Assembly (NCBI RefSeq): GCF_964194025.1
Contig: NC_134474.1
Coordinates: forward strand, 17,732,001 to 17,796,000
Length of the DNA stretch: 64,000 nucleotides
Reading direction: 5' to 3'
Source of the DNA: Convolutriloba macropyga
Taxonomy: Eukaryota
The translations under genes and the position numbers were made by a program. The notes beneath the pieces are model-generated. The model saw only the letters and a program-made list of their open reading frames with translations. It was not told the origin of the DNA and ran no database searches. Below, piece by piece: positions 5,450 through 64,000 of the stretch. Position 1 is the first letter of the stretch; every line of letters starts with the position of its first letter.

Positions 5450-8400
5450 AGATTTGAGTTGATTGCGTCAAGTCAAAACAGTTCTGAATATTTCCCCCTA
5501 GATACAGGTAGAGATTTCGTAAAGATGTCGGCTGCCATTTTGTCAGAAGGAACGTAATGAATTGAATTAGTCCCATCTTCCGTCTTGTCCCGAATGAAGT
5601 GAAATTTTGTTTTAATGTGTTTGATGCTCTTGTGCATGACTGGGTTTTGGCACAATTTGATACAACTCTGGTTGTCCTCTCCAATTGCTATTGAATGTTC
5701 CTGCTGGATGTAGAAATCCTCCAGAAGTTGTTTCAGTTACAATGCTTCTTGAACTGCTGCTGCCAAGCCCTGATATTTTGTTTTTGGTGCAGAAAGAGCA
5801 ACTGCGGCCTGCTTCTTGTCACCCAAGCTGAGTGCTGCGCCACGTCCGTTAAGGTTGAAGTAAGAGCCCGTCGTTGATTTTCTGTCGTTCTAATCACCAT
5901 AACTGTTTGCATCACTTTTCCTCTCTAAATCATAACTAGCTTCTTTTGTTTAAGTAAGTTTTAAATTTTTTGAACAATGGAGATATAGCAGAAGTCGTTT
6001 TGATTGATGATAGTCGTTATGATAGCCAGTGTTGATTGGTAGGTTCGTTCATGTGTCTGGACAGAAAGGTGACTGTGATCATGATTTCTGGCCTCGTCTG
6101 TTTGGCCAGATATAGAAGTGATCCAGCCAAGCATCTGATCCAACCAAGCATCATCGTCTCCGTTCTGTGTTGTCTGAAGTTTCAAATTCAAATGAGCTGG
6201 AGTTCTTGAGGGTTTGCATTGATCCATATGAAAACGCTCAAGCATTGTTTCTATGTAGCGCTCTTGGCAACTCTGACTTTGCCTTCTTCTCGTCTGATTC
6301 TTAGGCTCAGAAACCAGTGTAAGCTCCCTCTGTCTTCCATTTGAAATGTTGCCTCGAGTGCTTTTCTGACATCGGAAACCATTTTCATGCTTCTTGATGC
6401 TACAATGATGTCGTCAACCCAGACCAAGATGACGATTTGACCCTTGTCTTTTCTCTCGCGAACAAGCGATGATCTTTCCTGCTTCTGGTGAACCCCTGTC
6501 TCAGTAGTAAGTTTGCCAGTTCCCTATACCAGATGTTAGCTGTTTCAATTCATAAATTGGTTTATTCAGTGGACATACTAACTTCCCTCCATCTTATCCT
6601 TGTTTAATAAACTCATGTGGCTGATCCAGATACACTTCTCCCTCTATTGGTGAGTGCAGGAAAGCCGTATTGACATCAAACTGCTGCATCACATGGCCCC
6701 TCACCGACGATAGTTGAAGTAGAATCTTGAATGTCTTCGGCTTACAGGTAGGCGCAAAACTCTCAAAGTAGTCCAGTCGTTCCACTTGTTTGAAACCTTT
6801 TGCCACATAGCGTGCTTTGTATTTGTCGACTTGACCATTGGGTCTTAATTTCACTTGAGAGGCCCATTTTCCCGGTACGACGTTCCTCTCTGTGGGTGTT
6901 CTCACTATAGTCCAAGTCTCGTTGTCTTGCGGTGCCCTGAACTTGTCCTTCATTGGCCGGTGCCACTGACCCCAATTGTCACCTTGTCTAGCTTCGTAGA
7001 CTGTTTTGAGTTCTACATAGTCACCCTCAGTCACACCAAAATGGGTCCTGACTTCTCCAAAAAATTGAGGAACACTCCTTGCTAGTGTTCTTGGTCTGGG
7101 CTCTGCCCTTTCCGCTTGCTCCTGTGCCTCATCCAAGAAACCAACTGTCTCTGACTGTGAGAAGTCCCCTGTTTCACTGTCTCCGAGCGGCTCCGAATCC
7201 CTGAGACTCCCTCTTGTTGCAGTAGATTCTTCATCTAGTGCAGCTTCCTCAACATCCGAGGCATCTCGTCTCAGTGTTGTTATTTAAATGTTCACACACT
7301 CTGCATCATGCCACTCCTCTTTTATTGCTGTAAATGTGCCCTGCTCTTTTTTGTTGCCGTCGTCTTAATGACCATCATCTGGTTGCCAAATTCCCAGTTG
7401 TTGTGACCCCTCATCTAGTAGGTCGGGCCTCTCTCTGGTGTTAGGGAATGAGCCCACTTCGTACTCCTTGATGATCAGATCTCAAACGGCCATCTCCTTG
7501 CATGGGTTGGTAACGTACATTAGGTATCCGTTGTCTTCTCCAGTGTAACTTACCAAATTTCCTTCCAGAGCCTTGGTTCCAAATTTGCTTACGTCTCTGT
7601 TCCTCTTCCTCAATCAAAAATTGAACATTTTTTAATTGGAATCTTAGGTTCTATACCTCGCATCACCTCTGCTGGGCATTTTTCTTTTTCTCGTCTCGCT
7701 ACCAAGTTTTTGATCCTTGTTGCGTGGAGAATGGCTGCTCCCCACGTCATCCTAAGAAGTCCTGAGTCAATCAGCAAGCATCTTGCCATCTCCGGCAATG
7801 TTCTGTTGCATCTCTCAGCCAATCCATTTTGTTGTGGCGTGTCCGGTATGGTATTTTCCTTTAGAGTGCCTGCATCTAAACAGTACATCTTGAACTGCTC
7901 TGAGAGAAACTCCTTCGCATTGTCTTGTCTCAGTTTCGTAGGCGTCCCCACACTGAGAAAAAACTTCTTTAGGCTGGCCAGTACTTCACACTTTGCCTTA
8001 ACCAAGTCCACAAACACAAACTTTGGGTACTGGTCTGCAAACACAATGCAGAACCGGAATCCTGACAGTGACTTATTTCTGAAAGGTCCCATCGCGTCTG
8101 TGAAAACCCTCTCCAGCTTCTCCTCTGCTTTGGTCTCTGCCACTCTTATTACCGGAGTCTTTGCGATCTTGGCCAATGCGCACATATTGCATACATTATC
8201 CAGTTCCCCCATTGTGTCTGGTGCATTCCTGGCAACATCCACTTGATTCAAATGAACAAGTCGTCTGCGCCACTTCCTTGCACTGATATGTTTTACGCTG
8301 TTGGGTTTCATCTTGAATTATAGAACGCTGCTGGGTAAGTAAAACAAATTAACTTCTTGTGTTAGTTTTACCCGAGTTCCATTCTGGAATTTAATGCAGC

Positions 8401-9620
8401 TATTTTTCTTTCTCGAAAGTGCAGCTATGTCCCCAGTACGTGCATCTTGAGACTGATAGGTGGTTTGTAGAATAGTCAAGCACTTACAAAACTTTTTTGA
8501 GTTCCAATGGAAATTCCCCTTTGTTTGAGGGTATGATGATCGTCACACAGCCTCTGCGCACCGCTCTGGAAACCTCTCCATTGGGATCTCTAACCACTTA
8601 TTGAATTGGAACAAAGTCCAAGAACGCGTCGGTGTTTGTCGCTATTTGATATATACAGCCACTGTCCTCTAGCATGACTGCTGTTTTCCACTGGGTAAGA
8701 GCTGCCCAGTATTCTTTGTCTGGTGAAGCGAATCTTAGGCTCATTGCCACTGACTCATGTTTTACTCCATCTCTTTGTCTCTTGCATGGCCTGTCTAGGT
8801 GTTCTTTTTCACCACACTTGCTGCATTGTGCTGTCTCATTCCTCCTGCAGTCCTTGGCAATGTGTCCAGGGATCCCACACACAAAGCTGTTTCTTTTCCT
8901 GTGTCTCTTCTTGAAAACGAGCTTCACTGCCATTGCCACTGAGCCACTTTGCCCTTGTGCCTCTTTGCTGTGCTCTCATGGAAGTTCTGTAGCCTTTTCT
9001 TCAACTCTGTGAAGTTCGTTGCCGCGTTAATGTTTTCCTGTATAACAAAACTTTCATAACAAATGGCAGACCGTTGAGGACTAAGGCGTTGGAGAGGGTC
9101 TCTGAGACCACTTCCCCTGCCTGTTGCAGCCTTGTGAGCAACTCCTGTCCTCTGATGAAGAAGCTATCCAAATCCTCAGCATCCTCGAGCGGCAGTCGAA
9201 CCAGCTGTGCCACCAAAGTCGCCACTGCCGTCGTCTCCACACTCTGAAATCTCTCTTGCAAAAGCCTCCAGGCCTGTGCTCCATCTCCTATGCCGTCATC
9301 TTCCACATAGTCATGTCTCATCAGACTAAGAGTTGTTGCATCTAGCTTCAGTGCCATATGGCACCAAACATTGTTCCGCTTCTCCTTGATGTCTGCAACT
9401 TCTTTCTCATATGCATCCTTCAGCACCTTTTGGTTCTTCTTCTCATCATTGCTCGACCCACTGACTTGTGGTGCCGTGATTTTGGGTTTCTCCTCTGTAC
9501 CAGGTAGTGATTTGTAGAGTGCCTTTGTCTGCATCATTGCCACAAATCTTGTGCTCCAGATTGGAAAGTCCTGTGCCTTTCCTGTGTAGATCAGCAGTTT
9601 CACTGTCTGTTGATCCACCT
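5450..9620 (-). pseudogene. Copia gag-pol polyprotein with frameshifts and stops
   Basis: Gag FPIWSTRF; two zinc knuckles (xFVCGIPGHIAKDC, CSKCGEKEHLDRPC); protease LEDSGC; integrase WRRRLVHLN/CNMC, FTDAMGP, RQDNAKEF, NGLAERCNR; RT KARYVAKGFKQ, FDVNTAFL, LVWVDD; RNase H EDNQSCI, AADIFTKSL. Confidence 0.9.
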
Positions 9621-9736
9621 TAGTTTGAGCAGGCAAAATAGTTGTGAAAACAAAATGTAGTAAGCCGAAAAAGATTATGACTGTCAACAAAAAATTAGTT
9701 TTTTTAAGAAATTGGTTTTATGACTTAGAAAATTGT

Positions 9737-21540: not shown

Positions 21541-24000
21541 AATAATAATAAATAATAATTTAGTTCTCGAGTTTATTCCATTGCTTGCATTTATAAATTT
21601 ACAAACAACAAAACAAAACCCGAAAGGACATCAAAAGGTCACTAGACATGTCAAGTGATGCCTTTTAATTCTTCACAAAGTCTACTTATTTGTTAATTCA
21701 AACCCTCTCAAATCACATTTTACCCTGGTAATACCATTTTCCAATCAAACTTAAAAACCCTTAGAAAATGTTTAATAAGAAGACCAATTTTATTTGAAAA
21801 AAAGCAGCTCGCTTTATTCCTTACCAAGAAAGGTTAACAAAAATTCCGTTATCTATAATGAATGAGTCTCTATAACAATGTAAAAAGTTTGCTAATTCCT
21901 GTGCACTAAACGAGCATAGTTTTTGAACCATACTTTCATCCATTTTAGTTAAAACATTATATAAGTGTCTTAATCTTTTTATGAGTGACTTAATTCTTCG
22001 CTTCGTTTGAAAAAATTTTGTTTTCAATGGATGAGTTCTTTCGTTTATTTGGATATTCTCTTCAATTAATTCATGAAATGAGTTATTTAATAATTTGCTT
22101 GGATGTTCATGGCGGAGAACTCTTGACAGTAATTTTATCAGTTCATATATGTGTAACTCTTTAACAGAAAACAACTTGTGTTTCCATCTTAGTTCGTCAA
22201 TGCTTTGGAATCTCTTAGCTGAAAATAACAAACGAAAAATTCTGCTTTGCCGCCACTCTAATTTTTGAAGATCACTTTTATTGGCCACTCCATACAACAA
22301 AACCCCGTACTGTATTACTGGTTGAACGTAAACTTTGTATAATCAGACTAGTATGAGTCTTTTGAAAATTTTTTTATACTGATAGATGGCCGCTGTTAAT
22401 GAAATCATCCGACGAATTATTTTCTCAATGTGTGATTTGAAGCTTAGTTTACTATCTATGTATACTCCCAAGTACTTAATGTGGTCGACAAATTGGATAT
22501 TGTAATCATGAATTTTTATTTCAGGTGTCTCATTAGTGGCACCAAAACTTATAGCCTTGCATTTATCTCTATTTATTGCTAACTTATTTGATTCCATCCA
22601 AACTGACACATTTTCTATTGTATCATTAACTCCATGATCCACATTTCCGTAAATATTTGCATCATCAGCAAACATAGTTACATTACAGTTTGTACAAAAG
22701 CAGGCAGATCGTTTACGTAAATCAAGAACAGAAGTGGCCCTAAAACAGAACACTGTGGTACACCGCAAAAAATGCTTTCAAAGGATGATCGCTGCTTGCT
22801 AACTGAAACACATTGTTGTCTGTTGGTCAAATATGAATTCAGAATGGCATAAATTTTCCCCCTCAAACCATACCCAAAATATTTTTGGAGCAAAATTTCA
22901 TGACTCACAGTATCAAAAGCTTTCGATAAATCAATAAAAACTCCATAGTAACTTTCTTTCGAACACAAAGAAATTCTTATTGTTTCAACAACCTCCGACA
23001 CAGCGTCAATTGTGTTTTTCTTTGCCTGATATCCAATCTGTGCCTTGTTTATTACTGAGTACTTGGACAAAAAGGAAATGAGCCTTTTCTGTAGACATTT
23101 CTCAACAAATTTTGAAACAACTGGGAGCAGTGATATTGGTCTATAAATAGCGAACTTATTTACGTTACCATTTTTATACAGAGGTATAACATTGGCAATT
23201 TTCAGAGTTTAGGGAAATCGCCCTGGTCAAAGCAACGATTAATTAATTTTGCAAATGTTTCACTGGCTTGGATTGATCAACTTAATCAGTTGATTTCAAA
23301 AAAGTTATGTAGATCAGAGTATGTTTTTTTGGGCATTTGAATGATAATGTCGAAAACTTCTTTGGCTGTGACGTTAGATAAGAACATGGAATTTTCTAAC
23401 TTTCTGACCCGGCTTAGATTTGACAGCAGAATACAACTTTCAGATAGTTTCTTTCCTATTTCAACAAATACTTATTGATTTCATCAGCATTCAGATTGTC
23501 AATATTTTTTTATTTTCGTTCCTTTAACAGCGTCTATTATTGGAAATAAATTTTATTTTTGTTTGCCTTTTCTTCAATTTTTTGTTCGTAAAACTCTATT
23601 TTTGCTCTTTTTGTTAGGTTTTTTAAAAGATTACGCAGATTATTATATTTTTCTCTATTTTCGGCAGACTGTTCGTTTTTCAATCTTTGGTAGGCTTCAA
23701 GCTTTTCAAGACTAAGATTTTTGATCTGGTTATTCAACCAGGGCTTTTGAACCTGTTTGATTTTTTCGTTAGTGTGCTTTTTGAACTGATGCAAGGGTAC
23801 ATGACAATCCAACTCCTCGTTTGTCACCCTCGTTAAATCAGTAAAACTGAAATCTAAATCAGAAGATAGATATAGTTTAATTCTCGTTCCCAGTTTTTTT
23901 TGCAATACTGTAATTTAAATCTAACCTGAGTTCCTTTATTTGAAGTTTTTTAGTGGCCTATAAGAAGGTTTTTTGTTTGGTTTTTCCGGATCAATCCTTG
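21541..24000 (-). mobile_element. 5'-truncated CR1/L2-group LINE, degenerate reverse transcriptase
   Basis: KPWLNNQIK, YRPISLLP, VFIDLSKAFDTV, GVPQCSVLGPLLFLIYVNDL, MFADD, KYLGVYIDSKLSF spread over broken ORFs 21821-23905; (TTA)n-like tail near 21541-21560. Confidence 0.9.
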
Positions 24001-27332: not shown

Positions 27333-27894
27333 NNNNNNNNNNNNNNNNNNNNNNNNNNNNNNNNNNNNNNNNNNNNNNNNNNNNNNNNNNNNNNNNNNNN
27401 NNNNNNNNNNNNNNNNNNNNNNNNNNNNNNNNNNNNNNNNNNNNNNNNNNNNNNNNNNNNNNNNNNNNNNNNNNNNNNNNNNNNNNNNNNNNNNNNNNNN
27501 NNNNNNNNNNNNNNNNNNNNNNNNNNNNNNNNGAGAGATAGAGAGAGAATGAGAGAAAGACGGAAGAGAAACAATGAAAGAAAGACAGAAAGAAAGAAAG
27601 ATAGTATNNNNNNNNNNNNNNNNNNNNNNNNNNNNNNNNNNNNNNNNNNNNNNNNNNNNNNNNNNNNNNNNNNNNNNNNNNNNNNNNNNNNNNNNNNNNN
27701 NNNNNNNNNNNNNNNNNNNNNNNNNNNNNNNNNNNNNNNNNNNNNNNNNNNNNNNNNNNNNNNNNNNNNNNNNNNNNNNNNNNNNNNNNNNNNNNNNNNN
27801 NNNNNNNNNNNNNNNNNNNNNNNNNNNNNNNNNNNNNNNNNNNNNNNNNNNNNNNNNNNNNNNNNNNNNNNNNNNNNNNNNNNNNNNNNNNNNN
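27333..27894. other. Assembly gaps (27333-27532, 27608-27894) flanked by GA-rich low-complexity sequence
   Basis: Runs of N bordered by GAGA/GAAA repeats. Confidence 0.95.
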
Positions 27895-51423: not shown

Positions 51424-51501
51424 ATATACAGAAAAGCAGTGGACTCCCTTAGCCCAGATGACATAGAGCGAATTTGTTCATATCAGTTAACTGACAACTG
51501 A
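51424..51501 (+). CDS. UBL4A: UBL4A-like, last exon IYRKAVDSLSPDDIERICSYQLTDN*
   Basis: tttcttttcag acceptor, phase 0; matches the UBL4A C-terminal BAG6-binding (TUGS) motif Y...L..L..DDIER. Confidence 0.75.
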   Translation: MYRKAVDSLSPDDIERICSYQLTDN

Positions 51502-51760
51502 ATTGCAAAAAATTCCTTAACGAAGCTGATTCTATAATTATGGTGCAAGTTATAAATTTTGTTATCTAGTTCCCAGATATTTACTTTTAATTTAAGGTTT
51601 TTAGTTTTGAAGTTTTGTTCTCAAATATGGAAGTATGGGCTTATTAGGATTTAAGTTTTCTTTATTTTAGGCGTGTTGCGTGCTTGATTGATAGAATCGC
51701 GCAAGTGTGCGTTAATTCTGCTGGCTAGCTATAAATTTTATTGTTTTCAGATCTGTTGAG

Positions 51761-52614
51761 ATGACAAAAGTGGGTGATTGTCAAAGTAAAACTTTACTGC
51801 GTGTCTGTTGTTTCTGTTTGGAAGAAGTGATTCCAAATATTCCAGCAATCGAATCACTCAATCAAGATCTATTTAGCTTCGAAGTTCTGGATTACCACAA
51901 AGCTCATTTGCAAACTGAAGGTTCTGGGAAAGTTTGTAGCCTTTGTTATGGAATCTTAGACATAGAACCTGCAGTTATTGATAATGTTCTTAACTTAGTT
52001 AGTAGTTACACTGAAGACGCGTGGTTTATAACGGTGCACGTACCCGACGTTATTTACCTCAATTTCTTTCTCCTGCAGGTTTTACTGAAGTTAAGCGTTA
52101 AGAAAGTGGGAATTAATGACAGCTTCGTATCTGATATGAAAGACTTATTGTCCGTCTTTACAATCGATACAAAATTGATAAACATCAAAGAGGTGTTTCG
52201 AAACACGCTGTGCTCCCGTCTCAATCAAGTCGCCAATTCTAAACCCAACTTAGTTGTGGGAAATGAAACCAGTTTACCCCGAAATTCGAGAGATTTCAAG
52301 CATAACTTTTCATGTGAAACACCTTTACAATCATGTCTGAATGTTTTAATTTTACCCCCGAATCCTAATTTGTTCACGGAGCTTTTAGCCGACAGCGCTG
52401 TTAAGCCGAATGCAAAGAAAATGAAGTTCTCGACTGAAAACGGCAACAATTTGGATCGGAATTGTTTTGTACAATCGGTTAATTCGGCGTTAGACGCCTG
52501 CTCCAATTCGCAGAAATTCTCTAAAGAAGAAGTTTATAAGTTGTTGGCCTCGAAATTCGACAAGGTGAAATTTCAGTTCAGTGTAACGGTTCAACCACTG
52601 TTCATAGGGGGAAG
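51761..52614 (+). CDS. PUS10: tRNA pseudouridine synthase Pus10, exon 1 (zinc-binding and THUMP-like N-terminus)
   Basis: CCFC and CSLCYGIL zinc ligands, IKEVFR, ends PLFIGG(R) at donor AG|gtaagg, phase 2. Confidence 0.9.
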
Positions 52615-55004
52615 GTAAGGTGAACTGAAAGTTTTATTAATGTAGAGACGGAAAGCTTTTTAGGCTATTAGGCGACCGTCCGGGCAAATTTGCATGGAAT
52701 ATTTCCATAAATTTTCCATCGATAGTTGGTAAAAGTAAATCAGTCGGAGCTTAAATGTAAACGGCTGTGTACGAAAATGGAGCAACCTTCGGGCGGATTG
52801 TTAAATTCATGCCAATTGTGTAGACACTTCATTGTTTACAGGAAGATCAACTATTTTGTCTGCTTTTCACTTATTTGTTCCTTTGTAACTGCGAATTTTT
52901 ATGCTCTTTTGGTTGTGTTGAAAAGGAAGAAAAAGAATAAGAGGACTTATTTGTTGTCTGGTAGCTATGCCCTTAGGGAAAGACTTCTTTCGATATTCAA
53001 ATTGTCCGATTGTGAATAGTGCAAAGCATGCGTTTGTTAACGCCTGGGCCGTAAGCTTATGTATCTATTGCATGACCAATATGTTATTTTTGTTCGCATT
53101 TTTTAGGGTTTTGTGACTTGAAATTTCAATGATTACCCCATTTTTTCATTCGACCGTTTTGACGTTCCTCATTTTGCTGCATTTTTGCATGAATGCCGTT
53201 CCGGTTTTTGTCTTATGTAAATTGCTTACATTCAAAAGTGCAATAGTTATCCATAGTCATCAGTACTATTTCGCTCGATCTGGATATGTTTAGAAGTCAA
53301 AAGTAAAAAGTAATTTCTATTTTTTTCTCTTGCACGTCTACTGCCTCTGCATGTTACTTCTATAATTTACCTTTCGTTTTTTTTTGTTTTGGAGTTGAAA
53401 TGTTCTGTCATGGTATGACTTGAAAATCGTCAGTTTGGTACTTTTCAACTATTATCTGTGCCCGAACAGTGTTTGGTGCCTTATTCCGCTTTTCTTGCAC
53501 GCGATTTTTCGTTTGATCTTTTTGTTTTGGTTGGCAGTATTCACGTATGACCTCTATTCTATATACAAGAGATTGTTTTATTTTTAGTTGAGAGAGCAGA
53601 GCTGCTCTCATTTAGTATTTTACAAAGTTAAATTTTAGGTAATTTATTTCTGTCTTTTAAAACTGATATATCTTTTGTCTAGTGACTTTATTCATCTTTT
53701 GAAAAACTGAATGCCCTCAGACACTTAAATTTATATACATGGAATGTAGTTAAATGAAACAAAAATCTAAGATTACTCTACCAGTTTAAGCAATTAGACT
53801 GTCGACAGTGTTGGCCTATATCAGGAGTTGCGAGCACTTAGATGCGCGTCTTTTCAAAGATTTTGAGGATTTTAATGTTTCCAATTGCATTATTTAATAA
53901 CACCCGACATCCGTTTAATGGCCTTGTTTGAGTGGAAACGCTGTACAGTTTTCAATGTTATTTTAGCCTGTCTTTTTAATAGCCGCAAAGCGATTGCGGA
54001 GGCTATTATTGGCCTTCACTTGGTTTTTTTGTCGTCAAGATTTTCACTTCAAATCTACTCTTCGTTCATTCATTCATGCAATTTCAACTGAATTGCGTGT
54101 AAGACGTGATTTTTCACTCCTAGTGGATGGAGTTGTCAGTTCATTCGCGTGATAAATTTTTGGTCACACGTGACTTACCTCACTTCCAAAATTGACTTGT
54201 AAAGTTTTGATAGTTCTAAAATTACCCACTGTTATGTTATATAGATTTTTTCTGCCACCTAACTCTTTGTTTCAAACAACGTAAATTTCAAGCAAGTCAA
54301 CTTCATATTTTTTCGGCAGTTTACTGGCTCTATTTTAAGTTTTAACACCACGCTGAGCAATTTGGATTCATTTTTTTGCTTTTTTATTATATTGAATGAT
54401 ATACTACAATGATATACTACAATGATACTTTTTGTTGTTAAAGATTTGTGTCTAATCGGAGCTTCCATTAATGAAATTTAGATGTTTTGAAATGGAATAT
54501 AATATATTTTTCTTTTCTTTGTTAATACTTTGAATCACGATACCTTTGAATAGTATTGAAATACGTCTTTTGAATTTATCTAAATGGATGTATTGAATGT
54601 TTTAGTAATACAGGTTTAATTTTTTTGTATGACTAGAACTGTTATAAGGTCTTCGCTTGTAAATTGCTTAAGTTGAAAATCAAGTCTGAAAACTACAGCT
54701 ACATTTTCATCTCTGAATTGAATTAATGGCTCTCACATTTTAAGAAACAGTTTACAAAAGCTCTAATTTTGTTAAATGGGCTCTCTAGAAAACTAATGTT
54801 TACGAAATGTCCAAATGTTAATTGCTCTCAAAACGAAGTTAGATATTGTTTTAGCCCTATCTCTTTTTTTGTCATTTGTTTTACTACTAATTTTTTGTTT
54901 ATTAATAGCCGCACAGCGATAGCTGGGACTATTATTGGCCTTCTCTTGGTTTTTTTTTACAATTCAAAGAATTTGAATTGTATTGGGGCGCTGTCTTTTT
55001 TTTT

Positions 55005-59182: not shown

Positions 59183-60170
59183 ATACTTGAAGTTCAACCG
59201 GACCCTGAGCCAAACACCCTGGTTCATTGGAGGGAAGCGGAAAGGTACCAGCTCAATCGAGGAGCTAATATCGGAGCCTTTGAAGCGCTTTTTCAAGTGC
59301 CAAAATTCAATGTTCCGTTCCTCCGGACGGGAAGATATTGATGTTAAAATGCTGGGCAATGGAAGACCATTTGCGATTGAACTTATAAACCCCCGTATTA
59401 CACACGTTACGACCGACCAGTTAGAAGCTATACAGGAAAACATTAATTCGAACGCAAATGGTAATATTTCAGTTTCCCATTTGCATAATGTGAAGAGGGA
59501 AAATTTATCCCAGTTAAGAGATGGGGAATCGGAGAAAACTAAAGAGTATTTAGCCGTGTTATATTCAAAAGGGGCGCCTTTTTCCCGGGAAGATAAAGAG
59601 AAATTGACATTCAGCGCTCCAATTGAAATTACCCAAAGGACGCCACTGCGTGTGTTGCATCGCAGGTCGCTCTTAGACCGCAAAAGGCATATTTTATGGG
59701 CGAAGCCTGAATTAACTCAATATGGGCGTGAACGCGGAAAGTGTTCACCCCCGCAACAGCTAATTATGGAAAATATATTATCGCAAACTGGAGCAGAGAA
59801 TGGTCAAAATGCGGATATAAACGAAAAAGAAACCACCATAAAACCCTTATCTGAAGATCTAAATAGGGTTTCACGTGATAGCGAAATATGTTCACACGTT
59901 CTGTCTGAAAATAATTGTGTTAGTTCTGAAAAACTTGTTCATGGTTTTGAGGATGGTTTCTCGCAATACTTGACATTAAGGTTGCTTACAGATGCGGGTA
60001 CGTACGTGAAAGAATGGGTGCACGGAGATATGGGTAGGTCTAAGCCGTCAGTGTGTGATTTATTAGGCAGATATGACATTGATATTGTTCGCTTAGATGT
60101 GGCGAATGTTCATTTGACATGGCCTATTGATGATAATGATATTTCCACTACTAATGCTATTGTTTCTTGA
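59183..60170 (+). CDS. PUS10: tRNA pseudouridine synthase Pus10, exon 2 (catalytic domain)
   Basis: ttgtttag acceptor in matching phase; YLKFNRTLSQTPW, SSGREDIDV (catalytic Asp), GRPFAIELINP, ITQRTPLRVLHRR, AGTYVKEWVHGD.GR.KP, LDV; spliced CDS 1842 nt = 613 aa. Confidence 0.95.
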
Positions 60171-63100
60171 GCTATAAATTCTATTTTCATATTAGAATGT
60201 TAAATATATTTTGGTTAAAACCTATGCGTTATAAATTGGAGACAAGTTTAATGCGTAGGGAATTTCTCTAATATTTAGAAATCTAAGTTGAGTGAGAAGC
60301 AGCATGGCTTTTTATATAACTATTCGATTTTTTTTTCATTAAATGCTTGGACGAATTTTCTTCGTAATTCACAAAATTGCGCTTGCAGTAAGTATTTGTG
60401 TGCTCATAAGCTTTTATCCAATTTACTTCCTCTAGCCATGCTGGGATAGAAAAAGTTATAAATTTAAGTTATAAAATCAGATCTACTCGTAGGTTGCGTG
60501 GTCTCATAGGACTCAAAAGTGCAGATGTTAATGGCGAAATTTGAAACAATCAGTTGAATGAACTCTATTGGTAACGTCTTGCATGTATTGCTTATTCACC
60601 GATTCGACTTCTTCAAGTGATTATTAGCTGCGATAGCTAGCTTAACAATTCTATTTTACAATTCATAGAAGTTTTGATTGTATTGGTGCGCTGTCTATTT
60701 TATGACTCGAAGAGGCGTTATGCTTTTTTTTGATAAGTCAGCGAGCAATGAAACCGAAGCTCAGGGAGTAAAAGAAATTGGACAAAGTTATTAAGTGAAA
60801 AAAATTGTAAGTGGAAAAAACATAATTGTTATTTTGTTTATCATACGTTCTTTTGAAATCGAGCAAGAAATATGGGTGTTAAAATTTTTCGCTAATCGAG
60901 CCATATGTTGGTACACGTTATCAAACTGTTTTTGGTATTTTTTACGGTAAGCAAATACTGTAAACAATATTTAGGCTATATTGTTTTGATAGCGTTGGGA
61001 GCTTTTTGGTAATTGAAGTGAGTGCTATGCTAATTTTAACTTTTTTTGAGGAATTTTATCCTATTTTTGCGAGATGAAGCAAGAATATTGATGCATAATG
61101 AAGTATATTGAAGCGTAATGCCAGGAAGCAATTTCAATTACAAAATTTTTGCGAAAAAAATGGTGGTTCTAAAGAATTTGGCAAAAAAAATTGGTGATAT
61201 TTTTGCTGTAATTTAAATGTTTTGCGCTTTAATGTTTTGCGTGTATGCTACTATGCGAGGAATTTTGATATCTCGATGGCATGAAGAAAGATTTCATTTT
61301 GAAAGTACTGTACTAAATGAAAAAGTAACGATCGTTTTTTTCCTAATTTGACTGAAGTTTCTTTACTTAGATGCGTCATTCTTATGATACTATGTTTTGA
61401 AGAGCTATTTTTTGATTAATACAACTTCGAGTCGTTTCTGGAATTCTTCCGACTATGTTTTTAAATTTCGTCATCAAAACTTTGTATTTCCACCATATGA
61501 GCTCATATCATACTGTATTGCAATCTGCTTTTTGTTCATTGCTTCCCTCTAATTTTTTGAATTGCTTGTGCACACCATTTTTCAATCTTAGTGGATTGAG
61601 TTTTTTTTGTTGATTTTTATTTTTTTTACAGTTGGTCTTCACTGAGATCTTACATGTTTTAACTTGCTTTTGAAATGAATACTCTTATTAAGCTAAAAAT
61701 TCTTGTAAACTCAGGAAGGCGTTTTTGTTATGCTGTATTATTTGTTTGTTTTTGTGGCTGAATTGCCTCTGCTGATATATGCAATAGATTTTTGTGAGCT
61801 GATGGTCATCAAAATTGATGTTAGATTCAGCAGTGTATTTAGCAGTTTATGCCGTGTAAATCTAATATTATTTGCATTCGGACAAAGTTTGTAGCAATTA
61901 TTTTACAATGACTTGTACTTTTTTCGCAGGACAGATTTTGTTCCCGGCTGGCTAATAAATTTCTCTACTTTTTTGGAAGCCCCTTTCGCGCCTTCCCCTC
62001 ATGTCCATTTACACTGTAAAGATAGGCTCCTTTAGTTAAAGCTGGAGACTATGAAAGCCAACTATTTGCCAATCGCTTGAGCAGCTCGTTGGACGTTAGA
62101 TGGCGATTCTTATGTGAGATATCATGTTTGGTCTCATAATAATTAGTTTTATATGTGAATATTTTGTTGTTGCCATATGATTGCAAAATTCTAAGGTAAG
62201 TAAATTGCCTCAATTAATTTTTTTACAGTAATTGGAAAATTTAGGTTTGCTTCTGGGTCTTACATCCCTGATAATTGTCAGTGGAGAAAAGTTAATTTAA
62301 ACCTGAAGGTTTTTAAATTTCGTTTTTAAACACCAAAATTAACAGTAGTGTTTGAACCATGAAGTATATCAATTTTGTTCAATGAGAAACAAAGCTTTGG
62401 CTGATAATGTTTGCCAATCTACCTGCTAATTTAATCTTTGGATCGGATATTTTGTTTTTAACGTTATGGTGATAGTTTTTTCCTCTGGTATTAAAATGAT
62501 CGCTGTGTTGTAATTTAGAGCGGATTCAACAGTATGAACTTTCAAATGGACGACATCGACATTTTGTATCAAATGGAGGACAAATAATCCTTGTATGCAT
62601 GAGCTGATTTTTTGTCCTAGGTGACGGGCTGGTAGACCTGCTCCGCCGTGATAACCGGCTCGTTTTTTGTGGATTACACACAACAGCGAGCGACATTCAT
62701 ATGGCCATGGATAGTGGGCCAGAATTCTCGGTATAATTTTTGCTTGCTTATTTTTCGTTAGTTGTAGTCGTTATGGATGATTGTCGCTTCATTATGGACA
62801 AAATATCAATGTTCAGCGATGATTAATGTTGAGGTTGCAAGCAGTTGTCGTCCATTTGAATTGTCGTCTTGTTAATCGGTCCCCTTTAGGACTTGTACTA
62901 CGTTGTTTCACCTCTACGTGTTCATTTTATTCATCGATATTCTCTCGACACTGATTGCTCCAAATTAGATTGATCCGGGCACGCGTACTATTAGAAACGT
63001 TGATGATACGAAGAACTGGTCGTTTTCGTTGGACATATTGAAAATCCGATTGGCTCTAGGCATAATTGTTAAACGAGTTTGTAAGCCTTCATTAGACTGC

Positions 63101-64000
63101 CTAATAAAATGTTCTGCCTTTTTGCCCCGATTCATGTAACCCCCTTTTTAAAATAAATTCGGTGTGGAATGATAGGGTTTATTTGATAGGCGCTGAAACT
63201 AATAGGGGTGCAAAACGATAACAGCTGACGATCCTAATAACAGCTGACGTCAGAAAAGTTATACATTTTGACTAAAATTCGTGTGATGCTTTACCCGTAT
63301 TTAATTGCTCTCAAACGAAGTTTGTAGCAATTATATTAGTCATGTCGGTCTCTGTTTTTAATGCGATTATTCGCTTGACCAATTTTTCGTCTGACGCTTT
63401 TGACTTTTCGACATCAAAAACGGTAAAAACAGGTAGCGCCCAGCGGTCATTAAGTGCTCTTAGAGCCTTTCAGCTCACTAGTCTTCACGTATGCGATTCA
63501 CAGAATCTGTAGTCGGTTATGTTTAGCTTGTTTCAACCACACAGACGACAAGTTAATGTGAATTTTGAAAGCATGTTTGACAGAAAGGCGATGCTAATGA
63601 ACTTCTGCAAGTAAAAACTATTTGCTTTCGCAAAGATCAAACTAGTAATTTTCCCATTTGTTAAAACTTTAAAACTGTTGAAACTTTTTCGTGCCTGGAA
63701 GATATTTGGGTACAGATGGTCACAATTGAGCTATTGTTGTCAATTAAACTGAAGCGCAAATTAATCCCTCTAAGTCGGTTTGTCAGTTAGGCAATTAAGG
63801 TTGCTATCTCTGACCGTGTTACAAAAACAACAATCTATTAGTTTATTATCACTGGGAATTATAACCTCAATGGCTCAATAAAGTTTAGAACACTCAAAAT
63901 TTGTCCGTATATTGGCGTTGTTTATTACCATAATACATGTTTTCAGGTCATAATGTCCGGAAATTTTTGGAACAGCTCCCATTTTCGGCAGTGGCTTTTT

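Follow-up and report, generated by a model that had tools for sequence, protein, structure and literature searches.

Introduction

Operons of the spliced-leader (SL) type have been described in nematodes, flatworms, tunicates, chaetognaths and rotifers, and a multiple origin is assumed for them. The operons of C. elegans reportedly consist of co-oriented but unrelated housekeeping genes which lie a few hundred nucleotides or less apart. In this nematode the upstream mRNA obtains its 3' end in a process coupled to the trans-splicing of its downstream neighbour. Nematodes employ a dedicated leader, SL2, for the downstream genes and carry a U-rich element in the spacer of ~100 nt.

In the flatworms Macrostomum lignano and Schistosoma mansoni one leader serves both monocistronic genes and genes in operons, among which pairs predominate (PMC8629364). 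An operon was called in Macrostomum for genes on the same strand, <1 kb apart, whose downstream member is trans-spliced (Ustyantsev & Berezikov 2021, PMC8629364); the intergenic distances in flatworm operons peak near 100 nt, with repeats enlarging them, and trans-splicing may extend to the first gene (PMC8629364). For the chaetognath Paraspadella gotoi operons were called at a spacing of <=250 bp in combination with leader evidence, and these RNA-validated operons are enriched in housekeeping genes and make use of no operon-specific leader (PMC12460157). Acoels are unmentioned among the lineages with operons in that study (PMC12460157). From the acoel Symsagittifera roscoffensis a 32-nt leader was published, by which 30.2% of the genes are trans-spliced (Martinez et al. 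2022, PMC9911081), in a paper where the word "operon" is absent. The searchable literature yielded no account of operons for acoels or any other Xenacoelomorpha. SL trans-splicing in acoels is already published (PMC9911081).

Here we describe the neighbouring genes UBL4A and PUS10 of the acoel Convolutriloba macropyga in a stretch of 64,000 nt of chromosome 7 (NC_134474.1, positions 17,732,001 to 17,796,000), called the window in the following, in which position 51751 corresponds to position 17,783,751 of the chromosome. The underlying assembly txConMacr16.3 comprises 1,175.98 Mb in 4,694 scaffolds with an estimated repeat content of 40%; according to the genome note, a run of stranded poly(A) RNA-seq exists (ERR13669978) and annotation is planned (PMC13650328). 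We propose, with a probability of roughly 45%, that UBL4A and PUS10 form an operon, possibly including cyclin C, which is conserved between Convolutriloba and Symsagittifera and is resolved by the acoel spliced leader.

The layout of the C. macropyga pair is like that of the single-leader operons of flatworms, e.g. Macrostomum. The latter, however, belong to the Platyhelminthes and not to the Xenacoelomorpha, use an unrelated leader and have their SL and poly(A) sites mapped by RNA. The pair also resembles the chaetognath operons, which were validated at the RNA level. In comparison with C. elegans, neither a second leader type nor a conserved spacer element was seen in C. macropyga. S. roscoffensis, finally, shares the leader and possesses an orthologous UBL4A-PUS10-cyclin C cluster with the same arrangement of splice acceptors in front of the start codons.

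If the proposal is correct, Xenacoelomorpha, which figure prominently in the debates on how early bilaterians evolved, would constitute a further animal phylum with operons and an independent case. It would also follow that a large genome rich in transposons (1.18 Gb), and not just a compact one, is able to maintain operons, and that gene annotation in acoels has to separate such units at their leader and poly(A) sites. As a single candidate pair, the locus carries modest weight on its own.

Gene models at the locus

The features of the locus are compiled in Table 1. Splicing of the first-exon unit copy 3 with the third and the last coding exon of UBL4A yields a protein which is residue-identical to XP_075249449.1, ubiquitin-like protein 4A isoform X1. 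PUS10 consists of two exons encoding 613 aa, the first of which is opened by the ATG as an exon of 285 codons, while the second matches Pfam Pus10_C with 9e-54. The exon junction (..FIGGR/YLKF..) is the same as in the RefSeq protein of S. roscoffensis, and the PUS10 orthologues begin at the equivalent methionine. Database proteins related to PUS10 exon 1 were found in genomic contigs only; one cluster among them includes RefSeq proteins of S. roscoffensis, by which three of the loci were assigned to this species. Protein searches with PUS10 exon 1, a UBL4A exon and full-length UBL4A returned no transcript assemblies, the hits being genomic ORFs or RefSeq models throughout. Four sequencing runs of one study, which cover positions 48000-53900, turned out to be genomic DNA, with contigs that cross the introns, a flat depth and exon borders devoid of splice joints.

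Table 1. Features of the UBL4A-PUS10-cyclin C locus, in positions of the window.
Feature	Positions	Strand	Remarks
UBL4A first-exon unit, copy 1	37376..37591	+	exon 1a 37376-37429, 56-nt intron, exon 1b 37486-37591; intact ORF
UBL4A first-exon unit, copy 2	41997..42212	+	used by RefSeq isoform X2, XP_075249450.1
UBL4A first-exon unit, copy 3	44176..44402	+	isoform X1; exon 1a 44187-44240, exon 1b 44297-44402
UBL4A third coding exon	48161..48369	+	spliced CDS equals RefSeq protein
UBL4A last coding exon	51424..51501	+	UBL4A/GET5-type gene; stop TGA 51499-51501
Spacer, UBL4A stop to PUS10 acceptor	51502..51750	+	candidate intercistronic region; must hold UBL4A 3' UTR and poly(A) site
Upstream acceptor-like site tttattttag	51661..51670	+	possible alternative trans-splice site
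Predicted SL trans-splice acceptor ttgttttcag	51741..51750	+	PUS10 mRNA would begin at 51751
PUS10 exon 1	51751..52614	+	10-nt 5' UTR, ATG 51761, coding part 51761-52614; donor AG/GTAAGG at 52615
PUS10 exon 2	59183..60170	+	Pus10_C catalytic domain; stop 60168-60170
Cyclin C start	63937..64000	+	acceptor gttttcag ends 63945, ATG 63953; single-exon CDS to 64846, past the window

The spacer between UBL4A and PUS10

From the stop codon of UBL4A to the ATG of PUS10 the spacer (51502-51760) measures 259 nt, and 249 nt remain up to the acceptor. The introns in its vicinity extend over 3.8, 3.1 and 6.6 kb. With 43% T, compared to 34% across the window, and a GC content of 33% the spacer is U-rich, and the hexamers AATAAA and ATTAAA are missing in it as well as in its S. 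roscoffensis counterpart; no poly(A) signal of UBL4A was identifiable in the spacer. An earlier note on this DNA had described two genes on the same strand, 259 bp apart, with the UBL4A stop at 51501 and the PUS10 ATG at 51761, a U-rich spacer free of AATAAA and nearby introns of many kb, and direct reading together with scripts bore out each of these points. The spacer and the 1.4 kb around it are single-copy in the genome. The last UBL4A intron is packed with extremely high-copy repeats at 48400-51150, where the summed contig word depth reaches ~10^5-10^6 vs ~50 in the flanks.

Besides an operon, the earlier note had considered a dicistron, in which a single mature bicistronic mRNA would keep UBL4A and PUS10 together, with translation of PUS10 via internal entry or re-initiation. 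The short distance and the missing AATAAA are what speaks for it. The spacer RNA, however, is no more stably structured than its shuffles (z +1.27) and gave no match to Rfam families at E <=1, UBL4A is a separate gene model in RefSeq, and the SL system of the organism makes internal initiation unnecessary. We hold a bicistronic mRNA for extremely improbable. The operon part of that note is in accordance with the layout described here as well as with the SL system and the spacing and acceptor in S. roscoffensis described below.

The hexamer TATAAA occurs twice in the spacer, at 51551 and 51730, and again 3' of the PUS10 stop. The decamer GCTATAAATT is located at 51727-51736, just 5' of the PUS10 acceptor, and reappears at 60171-60180 directly 3' of the PUS10 stop. 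Likewise, GTTATAAATT is present after the UBL4A stop (51548-51557) and 60 nt past the PUS10 stop (60230-60239). The repeated elements GCTATAAATT and GTTATAAATT may represent a poly(A)-signal variant of C. macropyga. A GU-rich block at 51663-51691 was also considered as a conserved downstream element of a poly(A) site and was dropped, as its local alignment score of 11 did not surpass the shuffle mean of 12.3.

As TATAAA at 51730 lies 31 nt 5' of the PUS10 ATG and TATAAT is found ~35 nt before the ATG in S. roscoffensis, PUS10 could be expressed from a TATA-type promoter with a very short, unspliced 5' UTR, the acceptor being unused. Yet A/T hexamers are common in a spacer of such low GC content, the decamer GCTATAAATT is also found after the PUS10 stop, where a promoter is not expected, and transcription would start on or past the ATG. 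Moreover, a TATA promoter would leave unexplained the acceptors which are conserved for three genes in two genera (see below), so that we rate this possibility as very unlikely.

The spliced leader of C. macropyga

The operon hypothesis of the earlier note requires SL trans-splicing in this organism, and the genome supports the premise. A search with the S. roscoffensis leader at <=3 mismatches gave 2,612 matches, while the reversed control pattern gave 0. The tail of the leader followed by GT has 1,264 exact matches genome-wide, the majority of which are arrayed in tandem on chromosome 9, between about 23.1 and 23.75 Mb. These SL RNA gene arrays run on both strands with periods of ~1.06-2 kb. 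In the SL RNA unit the leader (31 nt) is directly followed by GTAAGT. The unit folds with -32.9 kcal/mol (z -4.98) into a first stem-loop, which covers the donor, followed by an unpaired U-rich Sm-like site (UUUAUUUGAA) and another stem-loop. C. macropyga thus carries genuine SL RNA genes, and by these arrays the trans-splicing machinery needed for the operon hypothesis is present. The leader sequence is identical to that of S. roscoffensis; the donor in C. macropyga follows nucleotide 31 of the leader, whereas the S. roscoffensis leader was published as 32 nt (PMC9911081).

Among the >2,600 leader copies, the dispersed ones which were inspected are unlike the SL RNA genes in that the leader is fused to varied mRNA-like 5' ends. 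The first ATG follows 2-15 nt past the leader in 17 of 22 dispersed copies examined. In one repeat family the leader occupies the exact place of a "cttcag" retained by the sister copies; trans-splicing at such an acceptor is thereby fossilized in DNA. Many dispersed copies are members of multi-copy repeat families, and different acceptors have been used within one family. Some exhibit a truncated relic leader preceding a full one, recalling the mRNA "recycling" of dinoflagellates; mobile elements seem to propagate via trans-spliced RNA. Within 1.5 kb of sequence no A-tails were observed on the leader-capped fossil copies, and no retrocopies with the leader joined to the predicted 5' ends of PUS10 or UBL4A were found in the genome.

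Splice sites upstream of PUS10

The earlier note had pointed out two acceptors in the spacer, ending at 51670 and 51750, the latter 10 nt before the PUS10 ATG, and the lack of a strong donor. Both acceptors are present as described, and the donor-like sites in the spacer are restricted to the weak GTATGG at 51633 and GTGTGC at 51705. Defining a strong acceptor as a 10-nt tract with >=8 pyrimidines and a subsequent CAG, ending 3-12 nt upstream, such a site is to be expected by chance at ~1% of the window positions. The distances between acceptor and ATG at the locus match the short distance between leader and ATG in the fossil copies. We consider PUS10 to be probably SL trans-spliced at the predicted acceptor ending at 51750.

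A UBL4A-PUS10 fusion protein by cis-splicing, which the note had dismissed, was rejected here too: joining the exon that ends at 48369 to 51671 or 51751 leads to a stop after 6 or 2 codons, respectively, and therefore to no fusion protein.

Cis-splicing could still concern the 5' UTR, if PUS10 were a conventional gene. Its capped transcript would then start within the spacer or the last UBL4A intron, and a 5' UTR exon would be cis-spliced to the acceptor ending at 51750. With the donor-like GTGTGC at 51705 the cis intron ending there would measure 46 nt, S. roscoffensis has the weak donor GTAAAT likewise 46 nt before its PUS10 acceptor, and short introns do exist in the genome, such as the 56-nt intron in UBL4A. 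Both donors are weak, however, compared to the four real ones at the locus (GTGAGA, GTGAGT, GTAGAA and GTAAGG), and an intron of 46 nt would be shorter than any confirmed there. The succession of acceptor and ATG moreover matches the leader-capped fossil copies. A cis-spliced 5' UTR is in our estimation quite unlikely.

Conservation of the locus among acoels

C. macropyga and S. roscoffensis, both Convolutidae, have the gene order UBL4A, PUS10, cyclin C and gene X in common. Cyclin C consists of a single exon with 87% identity to its S. roscoffensis counterpart, and X is a conserved, serine/proline-rich gene on the same strand downstream of cyclin C. In S. roscoffensis the spacer between UBL4A stop and PUS10 ATG amounts to 268 nt in three assemblies. 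The further spacers vary: PUS10 and cyclin C are separated by 3,782 nt in C. macropyga, 425 nt in S. roscoffensis and 180 nt in a third, more distant acoel (ENA ERZ26859043), and cyclin C and gene X by ~1,420, 797 and 567 nt, respectively. The spacer between PUS10 and cyclin C of C. macropyga harbors a SINE- or MITE-like repeat of ~210 nt at 63298-63511, for which >3,300 candidates with ~90-92% identity emerged in a first look at the genome.

Acceptors precede the ATG of UBL4A by 5 nt in C. macropyga (tttcag) and 8 nt in S. roscoffensis, that of PUS10 by 10 and 8 nt, and that of cyclin C by 7 nt in both. For gene X, which serves as an internal control, there is none in either species; because of this the acceptor pattern is gene-specific and conserved and not a by-product of T-richness. 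The third acoel keeps an AG 8 nt 5' of its PUS10 ATG; there, PUS10, which has no intron, cyclin C and X lie together. UBL4A was absent within 10 kb upstream of PUS10 in this species, even at E below 20. Adjacency of UBL4A and PUS10 in relatives, which the earlier note had named as a check, was thus found in S. roscoffensis and not in the third acoel, and the linkage is not acoel-wide.

The UBL4A-PUS10 spacers of C. macropyga and S. roscoffensis do not align above shuffles (score 11 vs a mean of 12.3), so that length and acceptor are what is conserved and not the sequence. While the introns and the next spacer differ by kilobases between the two species, the UBL4A-PUS10 spacer stays at ~260 nt and free of repeats. 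This constancy suggests that insertions are not tolerated there. A length-constrained spacer is expected for an operon, yet it is compatible with a compact promoter too.

Operon or own promoter

Published spacer criteria extend from 250 bp to <1 kb, and the pair, with 259 nt from stop to ATG or 249 nt from stop to acceptor, falls within this range (PMC8629364, PMC12460157). It qualifies as an operon by the genomic criterion applied to Macrostomum if PUS10 is trans-spliced (PMC8629364). The acceptor before the ATG alone is no proof of an operon, since UBL4A has one too and trans-splicing affects ~30% of the genes in S. roscoffensis. As many genes with trans-spliced mRNAs are monocistronic, the acceptor alone is also no argument for an operon.

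Consequently, an alternative has to be weighed in which PUS10 is SL trans-spliced at 51750 and transcribed from a promoter of its own, located in the spacer, where it would overlap the UBL4A 3' UTR, or in the repeat-filled last intron of UBL4A, with the short outron being discarded. Most trans-spliced genes of flatworms are outside operons (PMC8629364), UBL4A shows the same acceptor before its ATG with only transposons upstream, and PUS10 of the third acoel keeps its AG with no UBL4A upstream. On the other hand, a promoter would need to share ~250 nt with a 3' UTR and a poly(A) site, and the spacer length has been kept in two genera (259 and 268 nt) while the surroundings expanded. A shared core promoter might further be visible as a conserved block, and no block of the spacer is conserved above chance. 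Taken together, we consider an own promoter of PUS10 rather unlikely.

The operon, our preferred reading, would operate as follows. RNA polymerase II would start at the UBL4A promoter or promoters and read through the 259-nt spacer, within which the UBL4A mRNA would be cleaved and polyadenylated. The 31-nt leader would be joined at the acceptor ending at 51750, providing PUS10 with a capped 5' end and a 5' UTR of 41 nt. We thereby infer both the addition of the leader to PUS10 and the co-transcription with UBL4A, from a layout, an SL machinery and conserved acceptors and spacing that were directly observed. PUS10 would accordingly be the downstream member of a two-gene operon of the SL type. 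Cyclin C may be a third member, being 3.8 kb away in C. macropyga and 180-425 nt in the two other acoels.

The first exons of UBL4A

Upstream of UBL4A transposons only were found. They include a copia-type LTR retrotransposon, with ORFs for integrase and RT, and a LINE RT, at 6594-9690 (-) and 21821-23070 (-). Runs of N occupy 27333-27532 and 27608-27894 of the window.

The first-exon unit of UBL4A is tripled at 37250-44450, with ATGs at 37376, 41997 and 44187; all three copies are intact and LINE fragments lie between them. Each unit comprises an acceptor, the ATG, exon 1a, the intron of 56 nt and exon 1b. In copy 1 the acceptor tttcag is positioned 5 nt before the ATG, and in copy 3 the acceptor ctttcag ends at 44181, in front of the ATG at 44187. 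RefSeq isoform X2 uses copy 2 and isoform X1 copy 3; alternative leader-acceptor first exons have thus arisen by a recent segmental duplication.
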